Virus record (IMG/VR): IMGVR_UViG_3300031951_000003
Coordinates: 124,001-188,000 of that record
Strand: one strand, 5' to 3'
Length of the DNA: 64,000 nt
Shown: piece by piece, positions 9,370 through 37,482 of the stretch
How the letters are laid out: every line of letters starts with the position of its first letter
Position numbering within the stretch: position 1 is the stretch's first letter
Notes under the pieces: generated by a model
Database searches by the model: none
What the model was told of the DNA's origin: nothing
The model's input: the letters and a program-made list of their open reading frames with translations, nothing else
Made by a program: the position numbers and the translations under genes

Positions 9370-10665
9370 ATGTCGAACATACTAACTAACATACAAAAAC
9401 TTTATAATCAATTTGATAAGAATAAGGATATGGTCTCTGAGGTCTATATAAAACCTGATGAGTCTTTATATCCAAATTTGAAATTTGCTAAAAGAACTAG
9501 ACAAGATGAGATAAATAAAGCTTTATTGGACGACTTACAAAAAGCATCTCAAATGACAGGTTTGGACATCACGATTGATTTCGCAAAGACTGACCACGGC
9601 AAATATGCAAAAAGTGGTAATGTAAGTAGACACTGGTCTCAAAATGCCGTAGACATTGACTATATAGGAGGAAAAGTTGTAAGTCCAAAAAATAGAGACG
9701 TTGTTGACAAGTTTGTAAATGCTCTTCTAAGTATGGGTTACAATAAGAATGCTGAGGGTTCATCACATCCTAAAGCTGTTTTGACCTTCGGTTTTGCAGG
9801 CCACGATAATCACGTTCACGTTTCAAATACAACTGGTTCACCGTCTTCTGTAGACCCCAACTACCAACCAAGTTCAGACGATTCAACTGAAGATGGAACT
9901 TCAGACACAACCAAGGCAGGTGCCTATGGTGAAAAAATCAATATAGGTGGAACAAAATCAAAATCCAAAAGTGCGGAAGAACAAAACCCATTACTTTACT
10001 TAGTCGCTAAAGACATTGGTAGTAAGGTTTTTAATCTTAAAGAAGGTTTCGGAAAAAACATCCAAAGTAATATGGGAACTATTGTAATTCCTGGTTCGAG
10101 TAATCCAAGAGTGAAAAGTCCGATAGATGGTGTAGTAAACAACAAAAGATTTGTTCAAGGATGTAAAAATGAGGTGACAATTGAGTCATCAACACAACCT
10201 CAGTTTTTTTTACAGTATTGTGGAATGACAACCAAGAAAGTAAATAATGGTGACCCTGTTTCTCAAGGTCAAGATATTGGAACTATGGATAGTAAGGACA
10301 ATGCTGAGGTGTTGTTTCTCGACAAATCATATAATAGAAAAAATATAGACCCGCAAAAATTTGATTCTTTTGTTGATAAACAAAAAGAGAAAGAGCCTAA
10401 TAAGAAAGTATATATAAAAGGTAGTAATAGACAATATTCGGACCCTGCACTTGCTGGTTTGATTTTATTACCAAAAAAGATTTTTGGAAATGTATACGAC
10501 AAGGACACAGGTGAACTCAAAACAAAAAAGTGGAAAGATTGGGACTCAAAAAGAGATGTCGACCCATGGATTGCAAACGCCTTCAAAAAAGTTTTCAATA
10601 AGAAAAAACAACAAAACGAAGGTAAATTACAAGAAAATATAAAAAGAATAAAAGGACTATTATAA
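9370..10665 (+). CDS. Putative peptidoglycan peptidase (Hedgehog/DD-peptidase M15-like domain plus degenerate M23-like domain)
   Basis: SRHWSQNAVDI...HDNHVHV Zn ligands; VKSPIDGVV...V.NGD.V.QGQ.IG; TATTTATA upstream. Confidence 0.6.
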   Translation: MSNILTNIQKLYNQFDKNKDMVSEVYIKPDESLYPNLKFAKRTRQDEINKALLDDLQKASQMTGLDITIDFAKTDHGKYAKSGNVSRHWSQNAVDIDYIGGKVVSPKNRDVVDKFVNALLSMGYNKNAEGSSHPKAVLTFGFAGHDNHVHVSNTTGSPSSVDPNYQPSSDDSTEDGTSDTTKAGAYGEKINIGGTKSKSKSAEEQNPLLYLVAKDIGSKVFNLKEGFGKNIQSNMGTIVIPGSSNPRVKSPIDGVVNNKRFVQGCKNEVTIESSTQPQFFLQYCGMTTKKVNNGDPVSQGQDIGTMDSKDNAEVLFLDKSYNRKNIDPQKFDSFVDKQKEKEPNKKVYIKGSNRQYSDPALAGLILLPKKIFGNVYDKDTGELKTKKWKDWDSKRDVDPWIANAFKKVFNKKKQQNEGKLQENIKRIKGLL

Positions 10666-10694
10666 AAAAACCCCCTCAAATGAGGGGTTTTTTA
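10666..10694. terminator. Bidirectional terminator
   Basis: A run-CCCCTCA-aa-TGAGGGG-T run between convergent genes. Confidence 0.75.
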
Positions 10695-10717
10695 TTAGTT
10701 CGTTGTAGAAGAATATA

Positions 10718-10888
10718 TTATTTTACTTCTTCTGCTCTAACAGAATCTACAACTGGAGCTACTGTAGAGTCTACCAATGTTGAGTCTGCTACTACAGCAG
10801 TTGAATCGGTTTTTACTTCGTTTGATGTTGCTCCGTTTCCACATGATGCCAATGCTACGATTGACAAGATTGCAAGGATTTTTTTCAT
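10718..10888 (-). CDS. Small lipoprotein (56 aa), absent from ORF track
   Basis: MKKILAILSIVALASCGNGATSNEVKTDSTAVVADSTLVDSTVAPVVDSVRAEEVK; lipobox LASC. Confidence 0.8.
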   Translation of the reverse strand: MKKILAILSIVALASCGNGATSNEVKTDSTAVVADSTLVDSTVAPVVDSVRAEEVK

Positions 10889-10989
10889 TTTCTTTTTGTT
10901 TTTTTTGTTAATGTTTTAATAACGTCTTGAGTTTATAAATATAGAAAAGTTTTTCAGAATCGTCAATTAGCAGTGTAAACTTTTTTTTG

Positions 10990-11074
10990 CGGAGAGTATT
11001 GGATTCGAACCAATAGGCCAATTGCTCGACCACAGTTTAGCAAACTGCTCCTTTAACCACTCAGGCAACTCTCC
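10990..11074 (-). tRNA. tRNA-Ser(GCT)
   Basis: Cloverleaf with long variable arm; anticodon loop TTGCTAA. Confidence 0.93.
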
Positions 11075-11078
11075 TTTG

Positions 11079-11152
11079 TGTGAACGATGGGGTTCGAACC
11101 CACGACAACTAGCGCCACAAGCTAGTGCTCTTCCAACTGAGCTACGTTCACC
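11079..11152 (-). tRNA. tRNA-His(GTG)
   Basis: Cloverleaf; loop TTGTGGC; encoded G-1. Confidence 0.92.
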
Positions 11153-11164
11153 ATATTACTTACG

Positions 11165-11237
11165 AGGTCTTACTAGGATTCGAACCCAAATTTCTTCGTC
11201 CGTAGCGAAGTGTATTCATCCATTATACGATAAGACC
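11165..11237 (-). tRNA. tRNA-Arg(ACG)
   Basis: Cloverleaf; loop CTACGGA. Confidence 0.9.
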
Positions 11238-11320
11238 TATCTGTTATTTTCTTCTAAACATTTCGGACAAAGTCCGTCTTTGTCTAAAAGTGTTCCGTGA
11301 ATTCCACAAATATTATTCAT
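11237..11320 (-). CDS. 27-aa zinc-finger microprotein within the tRNA array
   Basis: MNNICGIHGTLLDKDGLCPKCLEENNR; CxxH...CxxC. Confidence 0.55.
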   Translation of the reverse strand: MNNICGIHGTLLDKDGLCPKCLEENNR

Positions 11321-11332
11321 AATAAAAATTTG

Positions 11333-11403
11333 TTATCCCCCAAGGATTCGAACCTTGAATAATTGGACCAAAACCAATTGTGTTACCGTTACACCAGAGG
11401 ATA
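11333..11403 (-). tRNA. tRNA-Gln(TTG)
   Basis: Cloverleaf; loop TTTTGGT. Confidence 0.9.
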
Positions 11404-11408
11404 TAATG

Positions 11409-11482
11409 TGGACCCTCACGGACTTGAACCGTGGACCTACTGATTATGAGTCAGCCGCTCTAACCAACTGAGCTAAGGGTCC
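11409..11482 (-). tRNA. tRNA with CAT anticodon, most likely Ile2 (lysidine type)
   Basis: GGACCCTTAGCTCAG...GACTCATAATC resembles Ile2 rather than initiator Met. Confidence 0.85.
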
Positions 11483-11549
11483 TTAAATGATTGTTACACT
11501 TGGTTGTGTTACTTCCTCCTGACACCACTCAGGACTTCAATCATTTTTG

Positions 11550-11631
11550 TGGGAGTAGCTGGACTCGAACCAACGAACTCGAAAGAGGGAAGATTTACAG
11601 TCTTCTGCCATTGCCACTAGGCGATACTCCC
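11550..11631 (-). tRNA. tRNA-Tyr(GTA)
   Basis: Cloverleaf with variable arm; loop CTGTAAA. Confidence 0.93.
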
Positions 11632-11635
11632 ATTA

Positions 11636-11768
11636 AGGAAAGGAGAAGATGGTTGCGTGGACATCTCCTTTTACGATTGGCATTACTCAGGTGTATTTCT
11701 CCCAACTCCGATGATACAGACCGAAATACACTCTCGAGTCATTAGTATCACCATTCCCCAATCAACCT
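11636..11768 (-). ncRNA. Candidate pseudoknotted ncRNA between tRNA-Trp and tRNA-Tyr
   Basis: Nested GATTGG/CCAATC, ACTC/GAGT, GTGTATTTC/GAAATACAC; second hairpin AAAGGAG-ATG/CAT-CTCCTTT; crossing pairs GGTGATAC/GTATCATC and GGTTG/CAACC. Confidence 0.6.
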
Positions 11769-11773
11769 ATTTG

Positions 11774-11846
11774 CACGCACGGTAGGACTCGAACCTACAA
11801 CACCTAGTTTTGGAGACTAGTACTCTACCAATTGAGCTACGCACGC
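11774..11846 (-). tRNA. tRNA-Trp(CCA)
   Basis: Cloverleaf; loop CTCCAAA. Confidence 0.92.
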
Positions 11847-11851
11847 GTGAC

Positions 11852-12400
11852 TTATTTTTTCGTCCATTTACTTTTAGAGAGTAAGTCATCCCAATCTTCA
11901 TATCCTTGTTCACGAGCATACTCATCGTTTTTTTTCCGAGTATATTCTTTCACTTTATCGGGGTCTCTCATTTCATCGGAATCTTTGAAACCTAATGATT
12001 TCGCACATTCCTCTTCACACCAGTTGTGAGAACCTATCTCTATGTTTATTGGTAAGTCAGTTTCCAAGGATTCGATAAAATCTTCGAATTGACTTGCCGA
12101 TTCATAAGGCATTGTGTAGATTCCTTCATGAACCTGATATCCACTTTCATTTTTACTGTCGAAAACCTCGATTCTACCCATTCTGTATTTTTCACCCATG
12201 AGTGAAAATACACCATATCCCACAGTTGAATAACTGAATCTACCACGAGTGCTTACACCTAACATATCAACACATCTTGGATTTGCCTCCATGTAATGCG
12301 CTAAGTGGTCAACAAGCATCTCATCACTTAGTTCTTTTCCTTCTTGTTTTCTTCGGATGTTATTCAGGAACCATAACAAATCCGCTCTATTGATTTTCAT
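11852..12400 (-). CDS. Hypothetical protein
   Basis: 182-aa ORF; TATCTTTG upstream (12416-12423). Confidence 0.7.
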   Translation of the reverse strand: MKINRADLLWFLNNIRRKQEGKELSDEMLVDHLAHYMEANPRCVDMLGVSTRGRFSYSTVGYGVFSLMGEKYRMGRIEVFDSKNESGYQVHEGIYTMPYESASQFEDFIESLETDLPINIEIGSHNWCEEECAKSLGFKDSDEMRDPDKVKEYTRKKNDEYAREQGYEDWDDLLSKSKWTKK

Positions 12401-12428
12401 AATTTTTTATTTATACAAAGATAACGAA

Positions 12429-12953
12429 TTATCTCTCAAGTTTTTTTATACATTCATCTATTTTATCTCTTAATCTACCACCATACCCGAAGTCACCATC
12501 TACCTGAACGTGTCTCCACATCGGAACTCTTGGTTTCATCCATTTATATTGACCATCAAGTTTCATGTCGTCGATTGAAATCCAATTTGAGATTTTATTA
12601 TCTTTTACCCACTTTGTGATTTCTGCTGCTCTTTCCCACTCAATTGAAGGTCTACTAAGTTTATTCCAAAGGTCCTGATGGGTTGTGATATCTACAATCG
12701 GAGCTGTTACACCATAGTATTGGAAAATACGTTTTAATTGTATAAAACTGAAATGTTTTCTCCAATCCGAACTCACAACTAAACTTGCGTTTGTTTCATC
12801 ACAAATTTTTTGAAGTGCTTGACAATCATCTTCAACCCATGGGTAAGGGATTGTAAAAGTTTTACTGTGTTCGTTCAGCGTAACTCTCCCATCACCCCAA
12901 GTTCCCCATGCCAGTGGTCCATCTACATCAATAAAAATAATTTTACGTCTCAT
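12429..12953 (-). CDS. HAD-domain protein of the Swiss-army-knife RNA-repair type (HAD_SAK_2-like)
   Basis: IIFIDVDGPL, VVSSDWR, WISIDD motifs. Confidence 0.75.
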   Translation of the reverse strand: MRRKIIFIDVDGPLAWGTWGDGRVTLNEHSKTFTIPYPWVEDDCQALQKICDETNASLVVSSDWRKHFSFIQLKRIFQYYGVTAPIVDITTHQDLWNKLSRPSIEWERAAEITKWVKDNKISNWISIDDMKLDGQYKWMKPRVPMWRHVQVDGDFGYGGRLRDKIDECIKKLER

Positions 12954-12967
12954 AACAATTTTATTTG

Positions 12968-13041
12968 TTGGAATGGGCGGATTCGAACCGCCGACATCTA
13001 ACGTATCAGATTAGCACTCTAACCAACTGAGTTACATTCCA
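12968..13041 (-). tRNA. tRNA-Ile(GAT)
   Basis: Cloverleaf; loop CTGATAC. Confidence 0.92.
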
Positions 13042-13047
13042 TTATTG

Positions 13048-13119
13048 AGGTCAGGATAGGAATCGAACCTACGTAGAAAGTTTTGCAGACTTCCGCCTAA
13101 GCCACTCGGCCACCCGACC
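13048..13119 (-). tRNA. tRNA-Cys(GCA)
   Basis: Cloverleaf; loop CTGCAAA; U73. Confidence 0.93.
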
Positions 13120-13126
13120 TTAATTG

Positions 13127-13198
13127 TGACCCCTGATGGATTCGAACCATCGACTTCTTCATTAAAAGTGAAGAGCTCTTCCACTGAGCTAAGAGGTC
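13127..13198 (-). tRNA. tRNA-Lys(TTT)
   Basis: Cloverleaf; loop CTTTTAA. Confidence 0.92.
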
Positions 13199-13202
13199 TT
13201 TG

Positions 13203-13275
13203 TGGTAACGGTCAGAATCGAACTGACCACACCTTGGTCTTCAGCCAAGTGCTCTACCAACTGAGCTACGTCACC
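13203..13275 (-). tRNA. tRNA-Phe(GAA)
   Basis: Cloverleaf; loop CTGAAGA. Confidence 0.92.
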
Positions 13276-13280
13276 ATTTG

Positions 13281-13353
13281 TAGTCCCTGTAGGAATCGAA
13301 CCTACGACACCTTGCATGTAAGGCAAGTGCTCTTCCAACTGAGCTAAGAGACT
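13281..13353 (-). tRNA. tRNA-Val(TAC)
   Basis: Cloverleaf; loop CTTACAT. Confidence 0.93.
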
Positions 13354-13360
13354 GAATTTG

Positions 13361-13432
13361 TAGCCCCGCACGGACTCGAACCGAAATCTCCACCGTGAAA
13401 GGGTGGCGTCCTAACCTTTAGACGACGGGGCC
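13361..13432 (-). tRNA. tRNA-Glu(TTC)
   Basis: Cloverleaf; loop CTTTCAC. Confidence 0.92.
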
Positions 13433-13457
13433 AAGAATTACAAACTTACAACCATTA

Positions 13458-13468
13458 TTTCAAAGAAC
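13458..13468 (-). promoter_or_regulatory. boxA-like antitermination element GTTCTTTGAAA
   Basis: Same word upstream of tmRNA; resembles rrn boxA. Confidence 0.5.
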
Positions 13469-13483
13469 CAAAAACTCCTTAAA

Positions 13484-13522
13484 TAAAAAAACCCCGAACT
13501 TCATTTCTGTAGTCCGAGGTTT
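13484..13522 (-). terminator. Attenuator terminator upstream of Glu..Ser tRNA block
   Basis: AAACCTCGGACT/AGTTCGGGGTTT + T run; 5' arm GGACTACAG can pair instead with CTGTAGTCT in the leader ORF. Confidence 0.85.
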
Positions 13523-13555
13523 GTATATATAACTCTTCAGGAATTATAGGCTATC

Positions 13556-13636
13556 TCATGAGACTACAGCGCGTGTCTTAAACCAACAAATCTCTTGTTG
13601 TTTACTATAGACTTTATTACGCACTATTGTTCTCAT
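13556..13636 (-). CDS. Leader peptide 1, MRTIVRNKVYSKQQEICWFKTRAVVS
   Basis: Follows TATATTTG (13654-13661); 3' end carries the antiterminator strand; codons match the downstream tRNAs. Confidence 0.75.
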   Translation of the reverse strand: MRTIVRNKVYSKQQEICWFKTRAVVS

Positions 13637-13695
13637 TATTATTATAATTACTACAAATATAGTAAATCTCTTTTAAAAATCAAATTATTTTTCTG

Positions 13696-13776
13696 TACCC
13701 CAAGAGAGACTCGAACTCTCACGACCGAAGTCATTGGTTCCTAAGACCAACGCGGCTACCATTACGCCATCGGGGT
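13696..13776 (-). tRNA. tRNA-Leu(TAG)
   Basis: Cloverleaf with variable arm; loop CTTAGGA. Confidence 0.92.
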
Positions 13777-13779
13777 ATT

Positions 13780-13995
13780 TTAGTGAGTTCCGTTTGTTAG
13801 AGAAACTCCGTGTTCAAACCCTTTTATGAAATCATTTATTTCTTCTTGGGTCATACTATTATAAACTCTCCCAACAACAAATCCAATTTCATTACCTAAA
13901 TCAGAAATATCGCCGATATAATTAATTTCTTTTTTGTGGTTATCAAATTCATTTAGAATTTTTTCCAAGATTGTATATGTAAACGCTCTAGTCAT
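13780..13995 (-). CDS. Hypothetical protein
   Basis: Start moved to MTRAFTY to avoid overlap with tRNA-Arg. Confidence 0.55.
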   Translation of the reverse strand: MTRAFTYTILEKILNEFDNHKKEINYIGDISDLGNEIGFVVGRVYNSMTQEEINDFIKGFEHGVSLTNGTH

Positions 13996-14007
13996 TTTTT
14001 TAAGTTG

Positions 14008-14079
14008 TAGTCCCGCCAAGAATCGAACTTGGAATTACTGCTTAGAAGGCAGTAGTTATATCCATTTAACTACAGGACC
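14008..14079 (-). tRNA. tRNA-Arg(TCT)
   Basis: Cloverleaf; loop CTTCTAA. Confidence 0.92.
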
Positions 14080-14083
14080 AAAG

Positions 14084-14170
14084 TACCTCAGGTGGGACTT
14101 GAACCCACACGGACATTTTCTGTCCACAAGATTTTAAGTCTTGCGCGTATACCGATTTCGCCACCAAGGT
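14084..14170 (-). tRNA. tRNA-Leu(TAA)
   Basis: Cloverleaf with variable arm; loop CTTAAAA. Confidence 0.93.
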
Positions 14171-14212
14171 ATAAAACAAAAGTAAGGAATCAGTATTGAA
14201 AAAACAAATGAA

Positions 14213-14917
14213 TTAGAACTTTTCTTCCCAAACAGTATCTCTTTCTGTTTCTTCAATATTCATTGTGTGATTTAAGGTTATCTCTTTACGGTCCAAATCA
14301 ATTTCGAAATTACCTTGAGAACCTTCGTTGATTTCCCATCCACCAAAATTATTTTCAAGCATTCTGTATGCGTAGTCTGAAACCACCGCAGGAACAGAAT
14401 CACCATTTGTAAAATCGTCTTCCAAGTAACCAGAGTCACCACTTCCATTGTAGTCAAGTTGAAGGACTCTATCACTAATTTCCTCGTCGTTTTCTAACGT
14501 ATCAAAAAGCTCCATTAAATCCTCATTGTCGTCTTCTTCCAAAGAATGAGTAATAGATTCGGTATTCCCAACATCATAGTAGCTATAGTCATAGGAGATT
14601 GAAATTTCTCTAGTTTTACAATCAATCTCAATCATAACTCTTCCCCAATTGATATCGTCATATTCGGGTTGTTTAATTAGTTCATTTTCACAAACATAAT
14701 AAATGCTTTTCTGAAAAATTGGAATTAATCCTTCAGGAATTTCCGCAACGTAATTATTTGAAAAATGTGTTACATTTTTCCAATCGATATCGTCACAATC
14801 AAAATAAGAGGTATTCATTTCGAATTCGACAAATGCATCTTCCATTCCGATGGAACCTAAATAACGACAGATACGATTTAAATACTTTTTTTCGTCTTTA
14901 GTTAATAAATCTTTCAT
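14213..14917 (-). CDS. DUF6878-like protein
   Basis: YNGSGDSG...GWEINEGSQG C-terminal motif. Confidence 0.6.
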   Translation of the reverse strand: MKDLLTKDEKKYLNRICRYLGSIGMEDAFVEFEMNTSYFDCDDIDWKNVTHFSNNYVAEIPEGLIPIFQKSIYYVCENELIKQPEYDDINWGRVMIEIDCKTREISISYDYSYYDVGNTESITHSLEEDDNEDLMELFDTLENDEEISDRVLQLDYNGSGDSGYLEDDFTNGDSVPAVVSDYAYRMLENNFGGWEINEGSQGNFEIDLDRKEITLNHTMNIEETERDTVWEEKF

Positions 14918-14930
14918 GATAATATAAATA

Positions 14931-15284
14931 TCAATCTTCGAACTCTAATTTTATTGTTTTCAACATCCAAGATGGCCTTGTGTTCGATACCATGTTGTTT
15001 ATCCATTCTTTTGCGGAAGGGATATAATTATTACAATCTTCCTTTACGTGTTGTTCACCAACATATCGGGTGTAGACTGTCTTACCATCACTGTTTTTGA
15101 ATTCAGGACCAAACCTCTTTTCCATTTCGAAAATCCCTTCCGAATGATGTCTAAACATTCTGTGTAAAGAATCCCCGAACCAACCTTTGGTCTCATCCAT
15201 CCACTCATGTAAATGAATATAATCCTCAGGTTTTCCACCAAACTTTTTAGCGGAACTTTTTGCATGTAAATTAGGGTGTGACAT
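14931..15284 (-). CDS. DUF6915-like protein
   Basis: MSHPNLHAKSSAKKFGGKPEDY..H.WMDETK..HRMFRHHSEGIF..EQHVKED; start reassigned. Confidence 0.7.
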   Translation of the reverse strand: MSHPNLHAKSSAKKFGGKPEDYIHLHEWMDETKGWFGDSLHRMFRHHSEGIFEMEKRFGPEFKNSDGKTVYTRYVGEQHVKEDCNNYIPSAKEWINNMVSNTRPSWMLKTIKLEFED

Positions 15285-15870
15285 TTCTCCAAGATTCTTT
15301 TCGATAACCAAATAAATGAAATTGCTCCTCAAAAATTTTATAAACGTAGTTGGATACTTCTTCATCATAAAATTCCTTCCATGGTTTCCTTTTTTCATTC
15401 ATTTGTCCTTCAAATTCTGTTTTGAATTTGTTATTACTTATGAACTCATCAAAGGTTTTCTTGATATCGGAATTCTCCAAATCCAAAAATTTCAAAGACT
15501 TGAGGTCATTCTCCAAATTTTCCTGTTTTATGAATTTATCAAATGGTCTACCCAAAATTTCATAATTTTTATGATATTGTAATTGATAATCATTAATTAT
15601 TTTCGGGTTTTCGAGGGATTCGAAAACCCAAGTTTTGAAATGTTTTTGAAAATCATTCAAATGATGTGAATACAAATAAAACAGGGATACTAGTCTAGAG
15701 TAAGGGTTTCTAACGTTTGATACGAAGAAATAGTCTTTTTTGTTGGAATCAAATGTAAAATGATGGTCAAAAGTTTGAAAACCCATAACACGAAGAAGTT
15801 CTTTAGTTGAACGTGTTCCTGTTCTTTGTGGGGTAAACCAATAAACTTTGTGTTTCTCTGAGATATGCAT
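15271..15870 (-). CDS. Sulfotransferase family 2-like protein
   Basis: PQRTGTRS and VRNPYSRLVS motifs; paralog of 7533-8153. Confidence 0.75.
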   Translation of the reverse strand: MHISEKHKVYWFTPQRTGTRSTKELLRVMGFQTFDHHFTFDSNKKDYFFVSNVRNPYSRLVSLFYLYSHHLNDFQKHFKTWVFESLENPKIINDYQLQYHKNYEILGRPFDKFIKQENLENDLKSLKFLDLENSDIKKTFDEFISNNKFKTEFEGQMNEKRKPWKEFYDEEVSNYVYKIFEEQFHLFGYRKESWRNVTP

Positions 15871-16103
15871 TAGTAAATTTTTGTGTTGTTTCTTCTTGCC
15901 TCTTCCGCTTCCTTATAGATACGTATCCAAGTTAGAGTAATATCAACAGGTGCTAACACCCAACACATGATAATCAAACCTAAAGTATCTAATCCAGGTG
16001 AGATACCAAGACCACCTGCCATAACATCTCTGTTCCATTTTCTTACTGACATGACAAGACAATAAGCCAAACAGATTAAATAATAAGACCAAAAAATTTC
16101 CAT
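15870..16103 (-). CDS. Small membrane protein
   Basis: Two hydrophobic segments; abuts the next gene. Confidence 0.55.
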   Translation of the reverse strand: MEIFWSYYLICLAYCLVMSVRKWNRDVMAGGLGISPGLDTLGLIIMCWVLAPVDITLTWIRIYKEAEEARRNNTKIY

Positions 16104-16119
16104 AACTTTCAAATTTTAG

Positions 16120-16192
16120 TGGAGAATGAGGGAGTCGAACCCACGACAACTTGAATGCAAATCAAGTGCTCTACCAACTGAGCTAATTCCCC
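16120..16192 (-). tRNA. tRNA-Ala(TGC)
   Basis: G3.U70; loop TTTGCAT. Confidence 0.93.
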
Positions 16193-16198
16193 TATTTG

Positions 16199-16271
16199 AG
16201 CCTCCTGTCGGAATCGAACCAACGACCTACTGATTACAAATCAGTTGCTCTACCTGCTGAGCTAAGGAGGC
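16199..16271 (-). tRNA. tRNA-Thr(TGT)
   Basis: Cloverleaf; loop TTTGTAA. Confidence 0.93.
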
Positions 16272-16277
16272 GATGTG

Positions 16278-16350
16278 AGCGGAAGACCAGGCTCGAACTG
16301 GCCACCCCGACCTTGGCAAGGTCGTGCTCTACCGAATGAGCTACTTCCGC
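16278..16350 (-). tRNA. tRNA-Gly(GCC)
   Basis: Cloverleaf; loop TTGCCAA. Confidence 0.94.
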
Positions 16351-16359
16351 AATTTTCTG

Positions 16360-16432
16360 AGCGGGAGACCAGGCTCGAACTGGCCACCTATAGCTTGGAA
16401 GGCTATCGCTCTACCAAATGAGCTACTCCCGC
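16360..16432 (-). tRNA. tRNA-Gly(TCC)
   Basis: Cloverleaf; loop CTTCCAA. Confidence 0.94.
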
Positions 16433-16436
16433 ATAT

Positions 16437-16538
16437 TCCGTTTTTCCTTCACATTTAGCCCAATCACCAGTGAAACAATGATTGGATTTTGGATGGAGAA
16501 GTCTGCAAGGATTTCTCCCATTAGACCGTTACCACGGA
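16437..16538 (-). ncRNA. Candidate structured RNA between tRNA-Asp and tRNA-Gly
   Basis: Closing TCCGT/ACGGA; internal GGAGAA/TTCTCC and CCAATCA/TGATTGG. Confidence 0.4.
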
Positions 16539-16551
16539 CAAACTCTACCAG

Positions 16552-16625
16552 CGGAACGGACGGGGCTCGAACCCGCGACCTCTTGCGTGACAGGCAAGCA
16601 TTCTAGCCAACTGAACTACCGCTCC
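16552..16625 (-). tRNA. tRNA-Asp(GTC)
   Basis: Cloverleaf; loop CTGTCAC. Confidence 0.94.
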
Positions 16626-16630
16626 ATTTG

Positions 16631-16817
16631 AACAGGTTTTTTGTGTCCTTTTACACATCATGACCAACATATTACTACATTGGTGGTTACATTTTCGTCT
16701 TTGGTTAATTACTCCTGACTTATAGTAAACACTACCCTCACCGCTCTGATACCGCGAATCAAGACGGCGTCTTTGGGATTCATATACCGTGGGGTTCCAC
16801 CACAGTCTTCACCTGTT
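16631..16817 (-). ncRNA. Candidate ~190-nt multi-stem ncRNA between tRNA-Asn and tRNA-Asp
   Basis: Ends pair AACAGGT/ACCTGTT; stems CTGTGG/CCACGG, CGTCTT/AAGACG, CCAA/TTGG, TGTGT/ACACA. Confidence 0.5.
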
Positions 16818-16820
16818 TTG

Positions 16821-16892
16821 CGTCCTCTCATGGGCTCGAACCATGGACCCTCTCGTTAACAGCGAGATGCTCTACCGCTGAGCTAAGAAGAC
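16821..16892 (-). tRNA. tRNA-Asn(GTT)
   Basis: Cloverleaf; loop CTGTTAA. Confidence 0.93.
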
Positions 16893-16898
16893 GTTTTG

Positions 16899-16972
16899 TT
16901 GGGAAGACAGGATTCGAACCTGCGGCCCCCTGGTCCCAAACCAGGTGCTCTACCGGGCTGAGCCACTTCCCA
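16899..16972 (-). tRNA. tRNA-Pro(TGG)
   Basis: Cloverleaf; loop TTTGGGA. Confidence 0.93.
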
Positions 16973-16989
16973 TTATTAAACAAAGGTAA

Positions 16990-17023
16990 TAAAAAAACCC
17001 CGAACTTTCAAGATTCAGGGTTT
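16990..17023 (-). terminator. Attenuator terminator upstream of Pro..Leu tRNA block
   Basis: AAACCCTGAAT/GTTCGGGGTTT + T run; CTGAATCT can pair instead with AGATTCAG in the leader ORF. Confidence 0.85.
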
Positions 17024-17045
17024 TAATGTTTGGCTTTGTTTTTTA

Positions 17046-17147
17046 TTATCCTACATCTGTATCTGAATCTAAGCATAGATTACCCCCATCACCATTAGGT
17101 GTTGTAGGTCTGAACACTAAATTCGTATTAACAAAAAGTTGTTTCAT
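17046..17147 (-). CDS. Leader peptide 2, MKQLFVNTNLVFRPTTPNGDGGNLCLDSDTDVG
   Basis: TATTTAT upstream; contains the antiterminator strand; rich in N/T/G/D/L/P and AGA-Arg matching the downstream tRNAs. Confidence 0.72.
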   Translation of the reverse strand: MKQLFVNTNLVFRPTTPNGDGGNLCLDSDTDVG

Positions 17148-17169
17148 ATTCTAATAAATACAAAGGATT

Positions 17170-17442
17170 TTATAAAAGTCTACTGAAGACTTTTTCAAAA
17201 TATTCTTCCTCTTCGTTGGTTAACGAATAATATTTTGATTTTAACTTATCGAGTTTTTCCTCAAATTCCCTTTCACCATACCCTGTAGGTTTGATGGACT
17301 TTTTAACATCACCTTTTTCATTATAGAGAGCCTGAGGTAGATGACCATCATCTACAAGTTCTTTAATCAATTCTTTGATGTCACTTTTGTTACAAGCTCG
17401 AACGAATTCGTATGGTTCGATATCAATATCTATGTATGGCAT
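17170..17442 (-). CDS. Hypothetical protein
   Basis: 90-aa ORF. Confidence 0.65.
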   Translation of the reverse strand: MPYIDIDIEPYEFVRACNKSDIKELIKELVDDGHLPQALYNEKGDVKKSIKPTGYGEREFEEKLDKLKSKYYSLTNEEEEYFEKVFSRLL

Positions 17443-17472
17443 TTTTAATAATTTTCACAAAGTTATGAAAAA

Positions 17473-18141
17473 TTATTGAATACCAAAAAAGTTTTTTCTT
17501 TTTTCTATGTCTTGCATTATTTTCTTGATTCTCTGAACAGTTTGGTCAATCTCTGAATCAAGTTCTTTAACTTTCATTTCGAGGCTTTGGATTTTTTCAG
17601 GTCCCTCTTTTTTATATAGGTATCTTTCCATAGATGTTAAAGGACTTTCGAGAGGTTTTCGCCCTCTTTTCTTTGGTTCTGAAGGTTGAGGTATTTCCTG
17701 TTTTTTCGGAATAAAAGCAATGTCAGTTTTTATTTCGGGTTCAAATTGTTTTTCTTTATTTTTTGAACCTGCGGGTCTTCCTCTTTTTCCTGTTGGTTCA
17801 GGTTTTCCATATCTTAATATCTTGGATGCAATTTTGGGAAACGTTGAGCTTACTGATTTGATGAAAGTTTGTGATTCTTTGGGACTCAACATATTCAAGA
17901 AATCGCCAAGTCTATACAATGCACCGACCAACTCTGAATCTGTATTTGCCTTTTCAGTCGTTTTAAATTTTACGAATGTTCTGAATTGCTCCATATTTGG
18001 TAAGGAATTAATCAACTGGGGTTTCGAATATAATTCCTCGAATAACCATTCTCCGAGGTTCTTAACAATCCAATCGAATTTTTCATCCGACATCAATCTT
18101 GCTTCGGATAATAAGTCTTCGTAAAAAAGAAAAAATTTCAT
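17473..18141 (-). CDS. Hypothetical protein with AT-hook-like motifs and C-terminal coiled coil
   Basis: KRGRP and KKRGRKP motifs; N-terminal LLSE; TATTTAT upstream. Confidence 0.7.
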   Translation of the reverse strand: MKFFLFYEDLLSEARLMSDEKFDWIVKNLGEWLFEELYSKPQLINSLPNMEQFRTFVKFKTTEKANTDSELVGALYRLGDFLNMLSPKESQTFIKSVSSTFPKIASKILRYGKPEPTGKRGRPAGSKNKEKQFEPEIKTDIAFIPKKQEIPQPSEPKKRGRKPLESPLTSMERYLYKKEGPEKIQSLEMKVKELDSEIDQTVQRIKKIMQDIEKRKNFFGIQ

Positions 18142-19464: not shown

Positions 19465-21135
19465 ATGAGGGTATTAGGATTTTCTGTCGGACACGACAAA
19501 GGTGCTGTTATTGTTGAAAATGGAAAAGTCTTGATTGGAATTACTCAAGAAAGAATTTCAAGAATCAAACATGATGGAGCACATCAAGGTGGATTAATTC
19601 CTGCCGAATCTATAAGATATTGTCTTGAAAATTCAGGATATACTTTTAGAGATATCGATTTATTTGTCTACAGCACAACTGAAATTGTTGATGACGTTCA
19701 AAAAAAGTTTATCGAAGAATTTCAGTTTGACCCTACGGGTAAATTCGAGTTTTTACCTCATCATTTGGCCCACGCATATTCTTCTTTTTTTAGTTCAGGA
19801 TTCGATGATGCCGTTGTGGTTGTTGCAGACGCATCGGGTAGTATTTTGAATGAAAAAAATAAATTACCTGAGTGGTATCCGAAAGTTAGTAGGAAAGGTC
19901 TCAATCACGAAGAAGATTGGACAGAAGCAATTTCAATTTATCATTTTAATAAAAATGATTACAAAGAGGTTTATAAGAAATGGATAAAATATCCTGTTCC
20001 GATTGATACTAACGAAGATGTTTCTGTCGGAACCGTTTACTCTGAAGGTTCACTTCAATTAATTTATGAACCCAATACCAATTCTTGGCCTGCAGGTAAA
20101 CTGATGGGACTTGCGTCATATGCTGACAAGGACATAGTCGAGGAAGCTCCACATTATATTGTTGAAACAGAAGATGGAGATATTTTCATTCCAAATAATA
20201 GAATATATCCCAAAGTGACATATGATTCAGATTTTTTCTCAAGAGCTTGTGTTGCTGGAATATATCAAAGGGAACAAGAAAGGGTATCTCTAATGTTAGC
20301 GAAGAAAGCAAAGGAATTGACCGATTCTGAAAATATTTGCGTGGCAGGTGGGTCTTTCCTTAATTGTAATTCTAACGAAAAAATCCTCAACTCAGGATTG
20401 TTTGAGGGTTGTTACTTCATACCTCCCTCTGACGATAGTGGAATCCCTTTAGGGTGCGCCTGGTATGGTTATCAACTTATGAGTCCGATTGAAAAAAATA
20501 ATTTTCTTTCTCCTTACATAGGTAAAAATTATTCTAACAATGATATTGTTTCAGCAATAAACCAATACCCAAATTTATATCATGAAAGATTTGATGATTT
20601 TGACGAACTTGTTGATAAAGTCTCACATTGGTTAACTCAAAATAGGGTCATAGGCTGGTTTCAAGACCAATCTGAAATTGGACCTAGAGCTCTTGGTAAT
20701 CGTTCAATCTTAGCATCACCTATCAACAAATGGATGACAGGTCACATTAATTCAGACATCAAAAAAAGAGAATGGTATAGACCGTTTGCACCCGCCGTGT
20801 TATTTGAACACCAAAGTGAAATTTTTGATTCTAATGTTTTTTCTCCATATATGTTGGTTACGACTAACGTAAAAGAATCTTGGAGAGATAAAATACCTGC
20901 AGTAACTCACATTGACGGTTCCGCTAGACATCAATCGGTTTCAGAAAAATCTAATTATAAATTTTATAAATTAATCGAGAGTTTTTATAACAAAACAGGA
21001 GTTCCAGTTTTACTCAACACGAGTTTCAATGGCCCTCATGAACCAATTGTTGAAACTCCAAAGAATGCAATTGACACCATGTTAAGTTGTAAACTCGATT
21101 ACTTAGTAATAGGAAATTATTTAATCAAAAGATAG
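19465..21135 (+). CDS. Carbamoyltransferase (NodU/CmcH family)
   Basis: HD..A, ERISRIKH, HHLAHA, GKLMGLASY, GPRALGNRSILA, RPFAP, LLNTSFN..EPIVE. Confidence 0.93.
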   Translation: MRVLGFSVGHDKGAVIVENGKVLIGITQERISRIKHDGAHQGGLIPAESIRYCLENSGYTFRDIDLFVYSTTEIVDDVQKKFIEEFQFDPTGKFEFLPHHLAHAYSSFFSSGFDDAVVVVADASGSILNEKNKLPEWYPKVSRKGLNHEEDWTEAISIYHFNKNDYKEVYKKWIKYPVPIDTNEDVSVGTVYSEGSLQLIYEPNTNSWPAGKLMGLASYADKDIVEEAPHYIVETEDGDIFIPNNRIYPKVTYDSDFFSRACVAGIYQREQERVSLMLAKKAKELTDSENICVAGGSFLNCNSNEKILNSGLFEGCYFIPPSDDSGIPLGCAWYGYQLMSPIEKNNFLSPYIGKNYSNNDIVSAINQYPNLYHERFDDFDELVDKVSHWLTQNRVIGWFQDQSEIGPRALGNRSILASPINKWMTGHINSDIKKREWYRPFAPAVLFEHQSEIFDSNVFSPYMLVTTNVKESWRDKIPAVTHIDGSARHQSVSEKSNYKFYKLIESFYNKTGVPVLLNTSFNGPHEPIVETPKNAIDTMLSCKLDYLVIGNYLIKR

Positions 21136-21136
21136 T

Positions 21137-22729
21137 ATGAGCACGATTTATGGTTTTTTTGGTGGTTCTCATAGTCCATCCGCGTGTTTAATTAGAAATG
21201 GAAAGATTGTATCATGTATAGAAGAAGAAAGATTAACCAGAATTAAGGCTGGTGACAACTTCGACAGTTTTCCAGAATTATCCTCAGAAGAAATTCAAAA
21301 ATACACAGGTCTTAATGTTCACGATGCTGATTATAGGGTTTTTGTTGAGCCGGTAATCGATGCGTTCGCAAAAAAATTGACCAAGGATAATTTTGAGAGA
21401 GTTGGTCATCACGATGCTCATTGCTATGGTTCTTATTTTACAAGTGGTATGGATGGAAAAGTTTTAAGTATTTCATACGACGGTGGAGGAGACAAAACCG
21501 TAATGAAAGTCTACCTTTGTGAAGATGGTAAAATGAATTTGGCATATTCTTATGATTTTGCAACAACGGGAAGTATACCTCATCTTTGGGCATTCAGTGT
21601 GACCTCAATTAGAGGATATAACGAGAATGGAGAGAGCATTTGGAAAATGTGTAAAGACGAAGGGAAACTTATGGGAATGGCACCTGATGGGTTTTACGAT
21701 GAGAGGATATATAAAATTCTGAATTCAATAATCGATTACAAAGACTTCAAATTTTTCCCATCGAATACGGGTGCGAAAGCTAGATTTGTTGTAGACACAA
21801 TGTTCAGGAAAGGTTATTTCGACTCACAAGAGAAACTTCAGGTTTTTTCGTTTAACTTACAAAAATTAACTGAAGACCTTTTCCTTAATTTTTTAGACGA
21901 CCTTCACACTAGATTTCCCGATTATAAAAAATTATGTTTTTCTGGTGGTTTGTTTGCCAACGTAAAATTAAATCAAAAAATTAATCAACTACCTTGGGTT
22001 GAGGAAATATATATTGTTCCACCTATGGGAGACGAAGGGTTAAGCTTAGGTGCATGTATAAAGAAAGCAGTAGACTTGGGTGAAATCACAAAACCATTCA
22101 AATTGGATAATGTTTTTTTTGGTAAAGAGTATGATGATGACCAAATTTCATTGATTAGTCAAAAATATAATTTTGAGAAAAAGATATATAACCCTTCTGA
22201 AATCGCTAAGAATATTGATGAGGGTGAAATTATCGGTTGGTTTCAACACGGATTTGAATTTGGTCCACGAGCCTTGGGTGGTAGAAGTATTCTTATGAGA
22301 CCAACAAGCTCAGACACTCATAGTAAATTAAACAAAAGGTTGAAAAGACATGATTCGATGCCATTTGCACCTATTGTAATGTCAGAATATTTTGATGAAA
22401 TTTTCTTTGAAACAAAGTCAAAATACTCCGCAGAATTTATGACTATTTGTTATCAAACTAAAGAGAATTGGATTGAAAAAATACCTGCGGTAATCCAAAA
22501 ATCAGATAAGACTGCGAGACCTCAGATTGTAAAAAGAGAGAAGAACTACAAATTTTGGGAAATACTTGATGAATACTATAAAATTTCAAATATACCTGTT
22601 TTGTTAAATACTTCTTTCAACACTCACAATGAACCAATTGTAGATAACCCCGAACAAGCCTTTTCTAAATTACAAGATAAAACTTTAGATAAATTAGTTA
22701 TTGGAAATTATGTTTACACAAATAGGTGA
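21137..22729 (+). CDS. Carbamoyltransferase (NodU/CmcH family), second copy
   Basis: EEERLTRIK, HHDAH, DGGGD, EGKLMGMA, GPRALGGRS, LLNTSFN. Confidence 0.93.
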   Translation: MSTIYGFFGGSHSPSACLIRNGKIVSCIEEERLTRIKAGDNFDSFPELSSEEIQKYTGLNVHDADYRVFVEPVIDAFAKKLTKDNFERVGHHDAHCYGSYFTSGMDGKVLSISYDGGGDKTVMKVYLCEDGKMNLAYSYDFATTGSIPHLWAFSVTSIRGYNENGESIWKMCKDEGKLMGMAPDGFYDERIYKILNSIIDYKDFKFFPSNTGAKARFVVDTMFRKGYFDSQEKLQVFSFNLQKLTEDLFLNFLDDLHTRFPDYKKLCFSGGLFANVKLNQKINQLPWVEEIYIVPPMGDEGLSLGACIKKAVDLGEITKPFKLDNVFFGKEYDDDQISLISQKYNFEKKIYNPSEIAKNIDEGEIIGWFQHGFEFGPRALGGRSILMRPTSSDTHSKLNKRLKRHDSMPFAPIVMSEYFDEIFFETKSKYSAEFMTICYQTKENWIEKIPAVIQKSDKTARPQIVKREKNYKFWEILDEYYKISNIPVLLNTSFNTHNEPIVDNPEQAFSKLQDKTLDKLVIGNYVYTNR

Positions 22730-37394: not shown

Positions 37395-37482
37395 GGAAAG
37401 ATGGCAGAGCTGGTCGATTGCACCTGACTTGAAATCAGGAGAACGGGGAACTGTTCCGTGGGTTCGAATCCTACTCTTTCCG
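37395..37482 (+). tRNA. tRNA-Ser(TGA)
   Basis: Cloverleaf with long variable arm; loop CTTGAAA. Confidence 0.93.

Follow-up and report, generated by a model that had tools for sequence, protein, structure and literature searches.

What do the short ORFs that head the tRNA genes of a giant phage of Bacteroidota do? The window, the whole stretch of 64,000 nucleotides analyzed here, codes for 23 tRNAs on its minus strand in two blocks. A first-pass annotation made from sequence alone had listed these tRNAs; they held as listed, though the array it described is interrupted by seven protein ORFs.

10989-16972, minus strand: tRNA array, 23 tRNAs in two blocks
13695..16972, minus strand: block 2, 10 tRNAs with five protein ORFs among them
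10989..13432, minus strand: block 1, 13 tRNAs and two protein ORFs
12429..12953, minus strand: HAD phosphatase of the RNA-repair 'Swiss Army Knife' type inside block 1 (PF18143, E = 9e-20)

Block 1 encodes the tRNAs for Glu, Val, Phe, Lys, Cys, Ile, Trp, Tyr, CAU (Ile2-like), Gln, Arg-ACG, His, and Ser-GCT. Those for Pro, Asn, Asp, Gly-TCC, Gly-GCC, Thr, Ala, Leu-TAA, Arg-TCT, and Leu-TAG are encoded in block 2. The HAD phosphatase gene is kept beside tRNA arrays in more than 60 contigs.

Each block was proposed by the first-pass annotation to be headed by a promoter motif, a short ORF and an intrinsic terminator, with an antiterminator strand inside the 3' end of the ORF. This anatomy held, although the promoter motif of leader 2 is only a variant; the antiterminator strand lies inside or adjoining the ORF end in both leaders. 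The unit heading block 1 is composed as follows.

13654..13661, minus strand: promoter motif TATATTTG, 17 nt upstream of the ATG
13556..13636, minus strand: leader 1 ORF, 26 codons and a stop
13620..13636, minus strand: segment 1, containing the AUG and pairing with segment 2 (anti-antiterminator)
13580..13618, minus strand: sensor stretch, codons 7-19 (N K V Y S K Q Q E I C W F)
13554..13570, minus strand: segment 2 (antiterminator strand), spanning the stop codon
13485..13522, minus strand: terminator 1, with segment 3 at 13522-13511, segment 4 at 13500-13489 and then a T-run

The antiterminator strand is complementary to the 5' arm of the terminator (CTGTAGTC/GACTACAG). The leader 1 RNA is predicted to fold with an MFE of -47.6 kcal/mol (z = -6.5), the 5' end of the ORF being paired to the antiterminator strand. 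From this pairing, and from the sequence alone, we infer a four-segment layout of the trp type.

Block 2 is preceded by a similar unit.

17155..17162, minus strand: promoter-like motif TGTATTTA, 7 nt upstream of the leader 2 ATG
17046..17147, minus strand: leader 2 ORF, 33 codons and a stop
17116..17125, minus strand: segment 1, candidate anti-antiterminator, weak in this genome
17082..17114, minus strand: sensor stretch, codons 12-22 (F R P T T P N G D G G)
17062..17071, minus strand: segment 2 (antiterminator strand), complementary to the terminator 5' arm
16991..17024, minus strand: terminator 2, with segment 3 at 17024-17013, segment 4 at 17005-16994 and the T-run at 16997-16991

At leader 2, TGTATTTA departs from an exact TAnnTTTG; relatives have TATATTTA at this site with the spacing unchanged. 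The segment 1:2 pairing is strong for leader 1 and most relatives. For the window's leader 2, neither the 1:2 nor the 2:3 duplex energy is individually above shuffles; its segment 1 reaches -5.9 kcal/mol, compared with -10 to -16 kcal/mol in relatives.

To place these units among related phages, we examined homologous elements on jumbo-phage contigs. There are 42 distinct versions in three leader families: F1 with leader 1 (13 distinct homologues), F2 with leader 2 (homologous ORFs in L006, L008, L011, L018, L019, and L021) and F3, with a longer form of leader 2. In F3 one leader, in which nearly all amino acids are present, heads the whole array. Of 43 distinct homologous elements, 42 keep the leader as an ORF. 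They retain its ATG, its open reading frame and a stop codon adjoining the antiterminator, and pairwise identity falls to 45-56%. The leader frame contains no stop in the 42 elements while the other two frames contain 159 and 148, and indels in the ORF are multiples of three or restore the frame. The ATG and a QQEICW core are invariant among the leader 1 homologues. Outside the core the leader peptide is poorly conserved, and the three-base periodicity of leader substitutions is only modest.

The pairing is conserved as well. Pairing in the antiterminator helix reaches 92.9% on alignment A2, three pairs having changed on both sides, compared with about 30% for slid controls. The terminator is 100% paired in the alignment and shares columns 128-133 with the antiterminator helix. 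Its hairpin has a mean energy of -16.8 kcal/mol and is followed by a T-run. Segments 2 and 3 of leader 2 covary among relatives (AGATTCAG/CTGAATCT versus AGGTTCAG/CTGAACCT and others), and more than 10 distinct segment 2 sequences are found among the elements. The best partner of the terminator 5' arm lies between -14 and +16 nt of the stop codon in 39 of the 42 elements and at +17 or +19 in the remaining three, where the chance of a partner beside the stop codon is about 0.25 per element. Segment 1 falls within codons 1-9, rarely extending to codon 14, in all three families.

The codons of each leader correspond to the tRNAs of its own block. Leader 2 matches block 2 at 23 of 32 codons, as first counted. 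The count of 19 of 25 for leader 1 held only in part: under strict wobble rules the match to block 1 is 17 of 25, rising to 19 if the Val-UAC tRNA also reads GTC, and to 21 of 25 at the amino acid level. The first-pass observation that leader 1 has no codon for Leu, Gly, Asp or Pro held. Together, 44 of 57 residues belong to the leader's own block versus 29.1 expected (P = 4e-5), and only 1.3% and 0.9% of the window's 233 small ATG ORFs have as high a content of the amino acids concerned. The match is to the leader's own block and does not extend to the other (Fisher p = 2.5e-4 in the window; for relatives, p = 7e-7 to 3e-4). When these 23 tRNAs were partitioned at random, 8 of 20,000 trials reached the observed match.

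The match is densest in the sensor stretches, the part of each leader in which stalling of a ribosome would leave the antiterminator free. There, 22 of 24 codons in the window are read by tRNAs of the downstream block (12 of 13 in leader 1 and 10 of 11 in leader 2), and sensor 1 touches 10 different block 1 tRNAs versus 4.8 expected (P = 1.3e-4). Across F1 and F2, 185 of 211 sensor codons match versus 137 of 275 outside. The regulatory codons are mixed, with no more than two of a kind in a row, and do not meet the criterion of a tandem run for a single amino acid. An invariant hairpin (13600-13584) lies within the leader 1 sensor stretch; as the QQEICW core is also this RNA hairpin, constraint on the RNA and on the codons cannot be separated there.

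Do the leaders change with their arrays? Between families, leader content differs in step with the downstream tRNAs. L011 lacks both tRNAThr and Thr codons, and L026 and L109, which do not encode Val, Tyr, Phe, and Lys tRNAs, have nearly none of those codons in the leader. Over all leader-block pairs the match is 0.80; permuting the blocks among all leaders lowers it to 0.62, and permuting them inside each family to 0.76. Shared descent inflates the permutation p-values obtained across relatives. The leaders do not follow recent tRNA deletions, for example in the comparisons L001 with L002, L019 with L020, and L115 with L049. The match of L037 is only 5/21, and five relatives encode a Pro block without any leader. 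F2 leaders also retain a Cys codon, and block 2 has no tRNACys.

The first-pass annotation had named leader ORF conservation, terminator/antiterminator covariation, codon match against shuffles and agreement of leader content with block tRNA content as checks. The first two came out in favor, the third did so in a block-specific manner, and the fourth held between families but not for recent tRNA losses. Its observation thus held overall, with comparative evidence stronger than it could give. Its attenuation reading is supported by these comparative tests. The analysis also found a candidate anti-antiterminator (segment 1), an element required by a trp-type mechanism, which is weak in the window's leader 2; translation and read-through remain inferred.

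The anatomy of the units, its conservation, the covariation and the codon match are shown by these data. Each unit is likely a ribosome-mediated (leader-peptide) transcription attenuator preceding a phage tRNA block, although translation, stalling and read-through are inferred without expression data. The spacing of 7-17 nt between promoter motif and ATG suggests a short mRNA that is leaderless or nearly so. A ribosome reaching the stop codon would cover segment 2, allowing segments 3 and 4 to form the terminator and ending transcription. If the leader were not translated, segment 1 would pair with segment 2 and the terminator would form too. A ribosome stalled between segments 1 and 2 would instead leave segment 2 free to pair with segment 3; with the terminator blocked, RNA polymerase would continue into the tRNA genes. 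Since the sensor stretch has one or two codons for each of many downstream tRNAs, slow decoding of any one of them would induce the whole block (an OR gate). As the tRNAs build up, the leader would be read fast and transcription would drop, giving negative feedback. This suggests that slowed decoding of those codons leads the phage to raise expression of the tRNA genes it carries, a function inferred here from sequence alone.

In this genome the tRNA genes probably also have promoters of their own. The first-pass annotation had noted three internal TAnnTTTG motifs; that list was incomplete, a fourth being present at 13448-13441 between terminator 1 and tRNAGlu. In the window, TAnnTTTG motifs lie 3' of both terminators, 8 nt upstream of tRNAGlu and tRNAPro.

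16981..16988, minus strand: promoter-like motif TACCTTTG, between terminator 2 and tRNAPro
13441..13448, minus strand: promoter-like motif TAAGTTTG, between terminator 1 and tRNAGlu, in a strongly conserved 30-nt stretch

The motif before tRNAGlu is found in 12 of 13 F1 relatives, and that before tRNAPro in four of seven F2 relatives, being absent in L006, L011, and L019. Given these motifs, control by the attenuators in this genome is perhaps partial, and transcription from internal promoters only is not excluded here. We infer that a second, constitutive promoter likely follows each terminator, with the attenuator adding to a basal level and not acting as the sole gate. None of the 22 F3 elements has a TAnnTTTG between the terminator and the first tRNA, a gap of mostly 5-11 nt in these arrays and of mostly 5-12 nt when F2 elements are counted too. 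Read-through therefore appears obligatory in these 22 arrays, and transcription from internal promoters only is implausible for them.

One rival explanation accepts the attenuator but has it sense the overall state of translation (for instance ribosome supply, coupling, or host shut-off), not the supply of the specific tRNAs downstream; the codon match would be incidental, arising for example from common ancestry or from structural constraint on the core RNA. In its favor, the leader 1 core is an invariant hairpin, the leaders do not track recent tRNA losses, and any stall in the sensor region would work under a four-segment design. However, the nearly disjoint codon sets of the two leaders partition like the tRNA blocks, matching codons cluster in the sensor stretch, those of sensor 1 call on 10 different block tRNAs, and families with different arrays have different leader cores. 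We consider this rival unlikely.

Nor do we favor the idea that the units are independent small genes, each with its promoter and terminator, encoding a conserved structured small RNA, a micropeptide, or both, that act in trans while the tRNA blocks are transcribed from promoters of their own. The terminated leader 1 RNA is very stable in silico, proximal TAnnTTTG motifs do occur in the window, and trans-acting RNAs and peptides derived from leaders are known in Sinorhizobium (PMC7968998, PMC7298713). However, this explanation, also unlikely, leaves several features unaccounted for: a conserved pairing with the terminator arm that excludes the terminator itself, the tie of the stop codon to segment 2, F3 arrays with no promoter motif ahead of their first tRNA, and the block-specific codon match. 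The peptide is also poorly conserved outside the core. A role in trans could possibly coexist with attenuation. That these are ordinary intergenic terminators of upstream units followed by ordinary promoters, with short ORFs and codon content due to chance, is very unlikely: short ORFs are common, with 122 of 20 aa or longer in 7 kb, and TAnnTTTG motifs follow both terminators, but the codon match and the comparative data (open ORFs in nearly all homologues with about 150 stops in each other frame, and pairing covariation) contradict it, and the 45-56% identities exclude an artefact of very recent descent.

Beyond attenuation as such, a bolder reading can be put forward. The leaders may serve as a 'table of contents' listing the tRNA genes that follow. 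Read by ribosomes, they would form an OR gate that responds when any single tRNA species, out of as many as about twenty, is lost to host anticodon nucleases, to host shut-off by the phage itself or to a codon-usage mismatch. Replacement tRNAs and the RNA-repair enzyme would be transcribed in response, and over evolutionary time the leader would be revised to follow the gain and loss of tRNA genes and their division between blocks. Taken jointly, these proposals are tentative, and we lean against the full set being correct. The link to host defenses that cleave tRNAs, drawn in the first-pass annotation, remains a conjecture that is merely possible; the RNA-repair-type HAD in block 1 is circumstantial, fitting the link without testing it.

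How do these units compare with known systems? No description of a regulatory sensor upstream of phage tRNA genes was found in the literature searched, nor was a cultured relative. The T-box riboswitch model of Rfam had no match at E <= 1 in 10500-17700, and Trp_leader, His_leader, Leu_leader, and Phe_leader had none at either leader. Sub-threshold matches to Rfam leader families occur only at an unrelated terminator near 10662-10783.

Like the trp, his, leu, thr, pheA, and ilv attenuators of Proteobacteria, the phage units have a promoter, a short leader inferred to be translated, predicted alternative hairpins 2:3 and 3:4 and an intrinsic terminator; the 1:2 hairpin is strong in leader 1 and weak in the window's leader 2. 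In both kinds of system the regulatory codons sit where stalling of the ribosome would leave the antiterminator unpaired. Those attenuators regulate biosynthetic enzymes and their leaders have a codon run for one amino acid, whereas the phage units precede tRNA genes and an RNA-repair-type HAD and have one or two codons for each of about ten or more tRNAs. The phage mRNA is also probably leaderless, and the setting is a phage of Bacteroidota. Multivalent attenuation is known from the ilvGMEDA leader (Leu, Val, and Ile codons) and the thr leader (Thr and Ile codons), where, as proposed here, a single leader responds to how well several charged tRNAs are supplied. In these leaders the runs are repeated and involve only two or three amino acids; the phage leaders use 10-12 kinds and up to all 20 in the long F3 form.

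In pheST-type leader control and T-box riboswitches, as proposed here, charging or availability of the cognate tRNA sets expression of a decoding component by a choice between terminator and antiterminator. A T-box, unlike the phage leaders, makes direct contact with tRNA through a single specifier codon and a T-box motif, and the pheST leader regulates a synthetase with Phe codons only. The terminated attenuator RNA of rnTrpL/peTrpL is a stable small RNA (PMC7968998, PMC7298713), as the leader 1 transcript perhaps is; rnTrpL and peTrpL act in trans, while no target or trans function is indicated for the phage leaders. Phage tRNAs replace tRNAs cut by host defenses (PMC10264068, PMC12409363). 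That work concerns the tRNAs themselves and offers a physiological reason for a phage to sense tRNA loss. If our reading is true, the output of each leader would be the sensed tRNAs themselves, closing a direct feedback loop.

ARAGORN identified 23 tRNA genes on the minus strand of the window (10989-16972) and, elsewhere in it, a tmRNA and a solitary tRNA-Ser. The first-pass annotation had described a minus-strand array of 23 tRNAs; the count held, and the array is interrupted by seven protein ORFs. Its two short ORFs in front of the tRNA blocks also held. Leader 1 precedes the Glu-headed block (block 1) and leader 2 the Pro-headed block (block 2); each has its own terminator, and a strand at or beside the 3' end of each ORF is complementary to the 5' arm of that terminator hairpin. 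No leader unit accompanies the solitary tRNA-Ser(TGA) at 37395. The features are as follows.

17147-17046, minus strand: leader 2 ORF, 33 codons
17024-16991, minus strand: terminator after leader 2, a G+C-rich hairpin then a T-run
16988-16981, minus strand: promoter-like TAnnTTTG motif 8 nt before tRNA-Pro, downstream of terminator 2
13636-13556, minus strand: leader 1 ORF, 26 codons
13522-13485, minus strand: terminator after leader 1, a G+C-rich hairpin then a T-run
13448-13441, minus strand: TAnnTTTG motif 8 nt before tRNA-Glu, downstream of terminator 1
12429-12953, minus strand: HAD protein gene between tRNA clusters of block 1, with a 'Swiss Army Knife' RNA-repair HAD domain (E = 9e-20)

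More than 60 related contigs keep a HAD phosphatase of the RNA-repair type beside their tRNA arrays. In the CAT-anticodon tRNA (11408-11482, minus strand), a G1-C72 pair rules out an initiator. Its C4-G69 and C5-G68 pairs are lysidine-synthetase determinants, and all three pairs are consistent with its earlier call as tRNA-Ile2. G+C-richer spacers of 118-194 nt lie within the tRNA clusters (16626-16819, 16433-16550 and 11632-11772, minus strand). The Asn-Asp tRNA spacer folds to -49.3 kcal/mol (z = -2.2), is of similar length in the compared locus L018 and has no Rfam match; it is possibly another small RNA or a tRNA remnant. The Gln-Arg spacer holds a 27-codon ORF (11237-11320, minus strand) with a CxxH...CxxC pattern reminiscent of a zinc ribbon in miniature. 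Directly 3' of the last tRNA, a 56-codon ORF (10718-10888, minus strand) carries a signal of the lipoprotein type, with a lipobox-like ...LASC...; beyond it is a bidirectional terminator (10672-10687) that also serves a convergent M23 peptidase gene.

Relatives were sought with two proteins embedded in the window's array and one from a related array. About 130 loci were recovered from contigs of uncultured jumbo phages, as long as 410 kb and sampled in freshwater, with marker-protein identity grading from 100% to about 30% and tRNA content and order varying widely. A search for cultured relatives, by BLAST of GenBank phages with the region and with the HAD protein, gave only tRNA-level or remote (~30% identity) matches. 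The leaders form three families. F1, the family of leader 1, has 13 distinct versions, each ahead of a Glu-headed block; F2, that of leader 2, has seven, ahead of a Pro-headed block. The 22 versions of F3 have N-terminal and tail sequences in common with F2 and a different, often longer, middle, and their arrays start Asn-Val-Tyr-Phe-Lys, Asn-Gly-Tyr-Gln-Pro or Ile-Trp-Cys-His.

Leaders not conserved as ORFs would have refuted the first-pass annotation, and this was not borne out. Across the 42 distinct elements, with pairwise identity as low as 45-56%, the leader frame contains 0 stops and the other two frames 159 and 148. The leader ATG is invariant, and the ORF was lost in only one element, at locus L053, where the array is likewise eroded. 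This decayed leader 1 (L053:9380-9710) is without the ATG and the QQEICW core and retains the terminator and proximal TAnnTTTG. In five relatives the Pro block has a promoter but lacks any leader, so the leader unit is not indispensable. Searching viral contigs with the leader-1 core gave 27 matches, two of them (contigs L084 and L095) due to chance. In bacterial and archaeal reference genomes, a 19-mer of the leader-1 spacer had five chance matches in coding DNA, with no tRNAs. The CUGAAGA in this conserved spacer resembles a hammerhead ribozyme, but by eye the GAAA core is missing and the candidate was rejected.

Covariation also favors the proposed terminator and antiterminator. In the F1 alignment, 92.9% of the cells of the antiterminator helix are paired, against about 30% in slid controls, and three of its pairs have changed on both sides (e.g. 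U-A to C-G in five sequences). For the F1 terminator helix the figure is 100%, and six alignment columns belong to both helices, which makes them mutually exclusive. In 39 of 42 elements, the strand that pairs best with the terminator 5' arm is found between -14 and +16 nt relative to the leader stop; the remaining three have it at +17 or +19. A partner would fall near the stop by chance for about 1/4 of random positions, and more than 10 different strand sequences are involved. The window leader 1 transcript folds to -47.6 kcal/mol (z = -6.5), and in the predicted fold the antiterminator strand is base-paired to the 5' part of the ORF, AUG included. The model thus predicts an anti-antiterminator (segment 1) that the earlier proposal did not include, completing a four-segment trp-type attenuator with the antiterminator strand (segment 2) and the two terminator arms. 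Nearly all elements have a counterpart segment 1 at codons 1-9; that of window leader 2 is weak and no better than shuffles.

Each leader had been described as written mostly in the codons of its own block, and this held. At the amino-acid level, own-block residues make up 21 of 25 in leader 1 and 23 of 32 in leader 2, for a total of 44/57, where the window's proteome would predict 29.1 (P = 4e-5). Of the window's other small ORFs (n = 233), only about 1% reach this richness in the relevant amino acids. By strict wobble rules, 17 codons of leader 1 are read exclusively by block 1 and five exclusively by block 2, with eight and 23, respectively, for leader 2 (Fisher p = 2.5e-4; 7e-7 to 3e-4 in relatives). 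Random partitions of the same 23 tRNAs equaled the observed match in only 8 of 20,000 cases. The sensor stretch, where a stalled ribosome would free segment 2, was taken to follow segment 1 and to stop at least 12 nt short of segment 2. With F1 and F2 pooled, 185/211 codons match in this stretch versus 137/275 elsewhere; the match is concentrated where attenuation would need it. The window's sensor stretches match at 12 of 13 (leader 1) and 10 of 11 (leader 2) codons. The 13 sensor codons of leader 1 use 10 different block-1 tRNAs versus 4.8 expected (P = 1.3e-4), and ATA is conserved in most leader-1 sensor stretches. Across 41 untruncated leader-block pairs, a block tRNA is without a codon in its leader in only about 5% of cases.

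Leader content follows the array at the family level, with finer tracking slow and partial. Where arrays are split in two, the codon sets of the two leaders are nearly disjoint; a single leader ahead of a whole array is longer and contains nearly all amino acids. Locus L011 has neither tRNA-Thr nor Thr codons and L021 neither tRNA-Asp nor Asp codons, while in L026 and L109, which have no Val, Tyr, Phe or Lys tRNAs, those codons are nearly absent. Permuting blocks among leaders lowered the match from 0.80 to 0.62 over all leaders and to 0.76 within families, and 0 of 20,000 permutations reached the observed match in either case. The result is favorable, though shared descent inflates these figures. 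Within the family, concordance of leader codons with tRNA gain and loss across 11 leader-1 versions was 9/11 for Phe and was not found for Val, Tyr or Gln. Leaders do not register recent tRNA deletions, as L001 versus L002, L019 versus L020 and L115 versus L049 illustrate, and L037 keeps an ancestral leader ahead of a five-tRNA remnant, which makes the tracking slow and partial. The marker proteins of L001/L013 (IMGVR_UViG_3300021599_002910) are 100% identical to those of L002, yet tRNA-Phe, tRNA-Lys and tRNA-Arg-TCT are missing and the leaders unchanged, which indicates very recent tRNA loss within one phage population.

Transcription of the tRNAs only from internal promoters would count against attenuation. 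The window has a TAnnTTTG motif after both terminators and a third 6 nt before tRNA-Leu-TAA. Between terminator and first tRNA the motif is present in 12/13 F1 and 4/7 F2 elements and in none of the 22 F3 elements (the array at locus L044 is of this type), where the T-run mostly ends only 5-11 nt before the tRNA. For F3 arrays, the sole visible route to the tRNAs is through the terminator. In the window, the attenuators most likely supplement a basal promoter with inducible transcription and would also gate transcription arriving from upstream. Most F1 and F2 and some F3 elements have TATATTT(G/A) 5-8 nt before the ATG (17 nt in window leader 1), a spacing suggesting the mRNA is leaderless or nearly so.

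A Bacteroidota host, assumed by the first-pass annotation, is indicated by two window proteins, one with a type IX secretion sorting domain at its tail and a SusC-like outer-membrane barrel.

43239-45146, plus strand: sorting-tail protein
2060-5335, plus strand: SusC-like barrel
19465-22729, plus strand: two carbamoyltransferases, adjoining each other

The phage tmRNA (1442-1837, plus strand; Rfam RF00023, 76 bits) has a TATCTTTG motif about 20 nt upstream and, by ARAGORN prediction only, an unusual tag peptide.

Ribosome-mediated attenuation of the tRNA blocks is the likely reading, and the attenuator interpretation is supported as far as sequence analysis reaches; translation of the leaders and codon-specific read-through are inferred. 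Any slow codon in the sensor stretch would free segment 2, and polymerase would then read into the tRNA block. Because the tRNAs of the block itself read the codons being sensed, the circuit would be direct negative feedback on decoding capacity. Candidate natural signals are an early-infection codon-usage mismatch, the phage's own host shut-off and host tRNA-cutting nucleases. The RNA-repair-type HAD in block 1 is compatible with a possible damage response, not proof of one.

In the ordinary reading, the terminator closes an upstream unit, the tRNAs are transcribed from a new promoter and the ORFs are meaningless. The TAnnTTTG motifs downstream of both window terminators favor it, but the leader homologues and helix covariation disallow it as the full explanation. 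That the units sense general translation status is unlikely, the codon match being block-specific. It is similarly unlikely that they are independent small RNA or micropeptide genes, though these could coexist with attenuation; leaders show only a modest third-position excess of substitutions, as would be expected if selection acts on codon identity and position, not on the peptide. Chance ORFs beside plain terminators are all but excluded by the same comparative data.

Phage tRNA arrays have been debated for fifty years as codon compensation and lately as an escape from tRNA-cleaving defenses; almost nothing is known of what regulates them. If attenuation is correct, a virus would be tracking decoding capacity at the resolution of single codons. 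At ~150 nt the unit is compact; it is also modular and could become a programmable sensor of tRNA supply. It makes a sharp, cheap prediction, that swapping a sensor codon should change the inducing tRNA. For annotation, a short ORF and terminator right before a tRNA array should not be written off as noise.

Leader peptides ahead of tRNA genes were not described in the literature searched, with most subscription-journal papers beyond its reach, and as far as it shows this would be the first leader-peptide attenuation of tRNA genes. A candidate precedent, a Phe-codon attenuator ahead of the E. coli tRNA-Phe genes, was rejected, as the MG1655 regions upstream of pheV and pheU have a promoter only, with no leader ORF or attenuator. 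At E <= 1 no Rfam family matched at the leaders, the leader families and the T-box model included. In anatomy the phage units resemble leader-peptide attenuators in their defining features bar two, the anti-antiterminator being strong in leader 1 and weak in window leader 2: their codons are mixed, without a run for any one amino acid, and the genes that would be regulated are tRNAs. The nearest concept is multivalent attenuation, as in ilv and thr, which is limited to two or three amino acids and which these units, if confirmed, would widen to at least ten.
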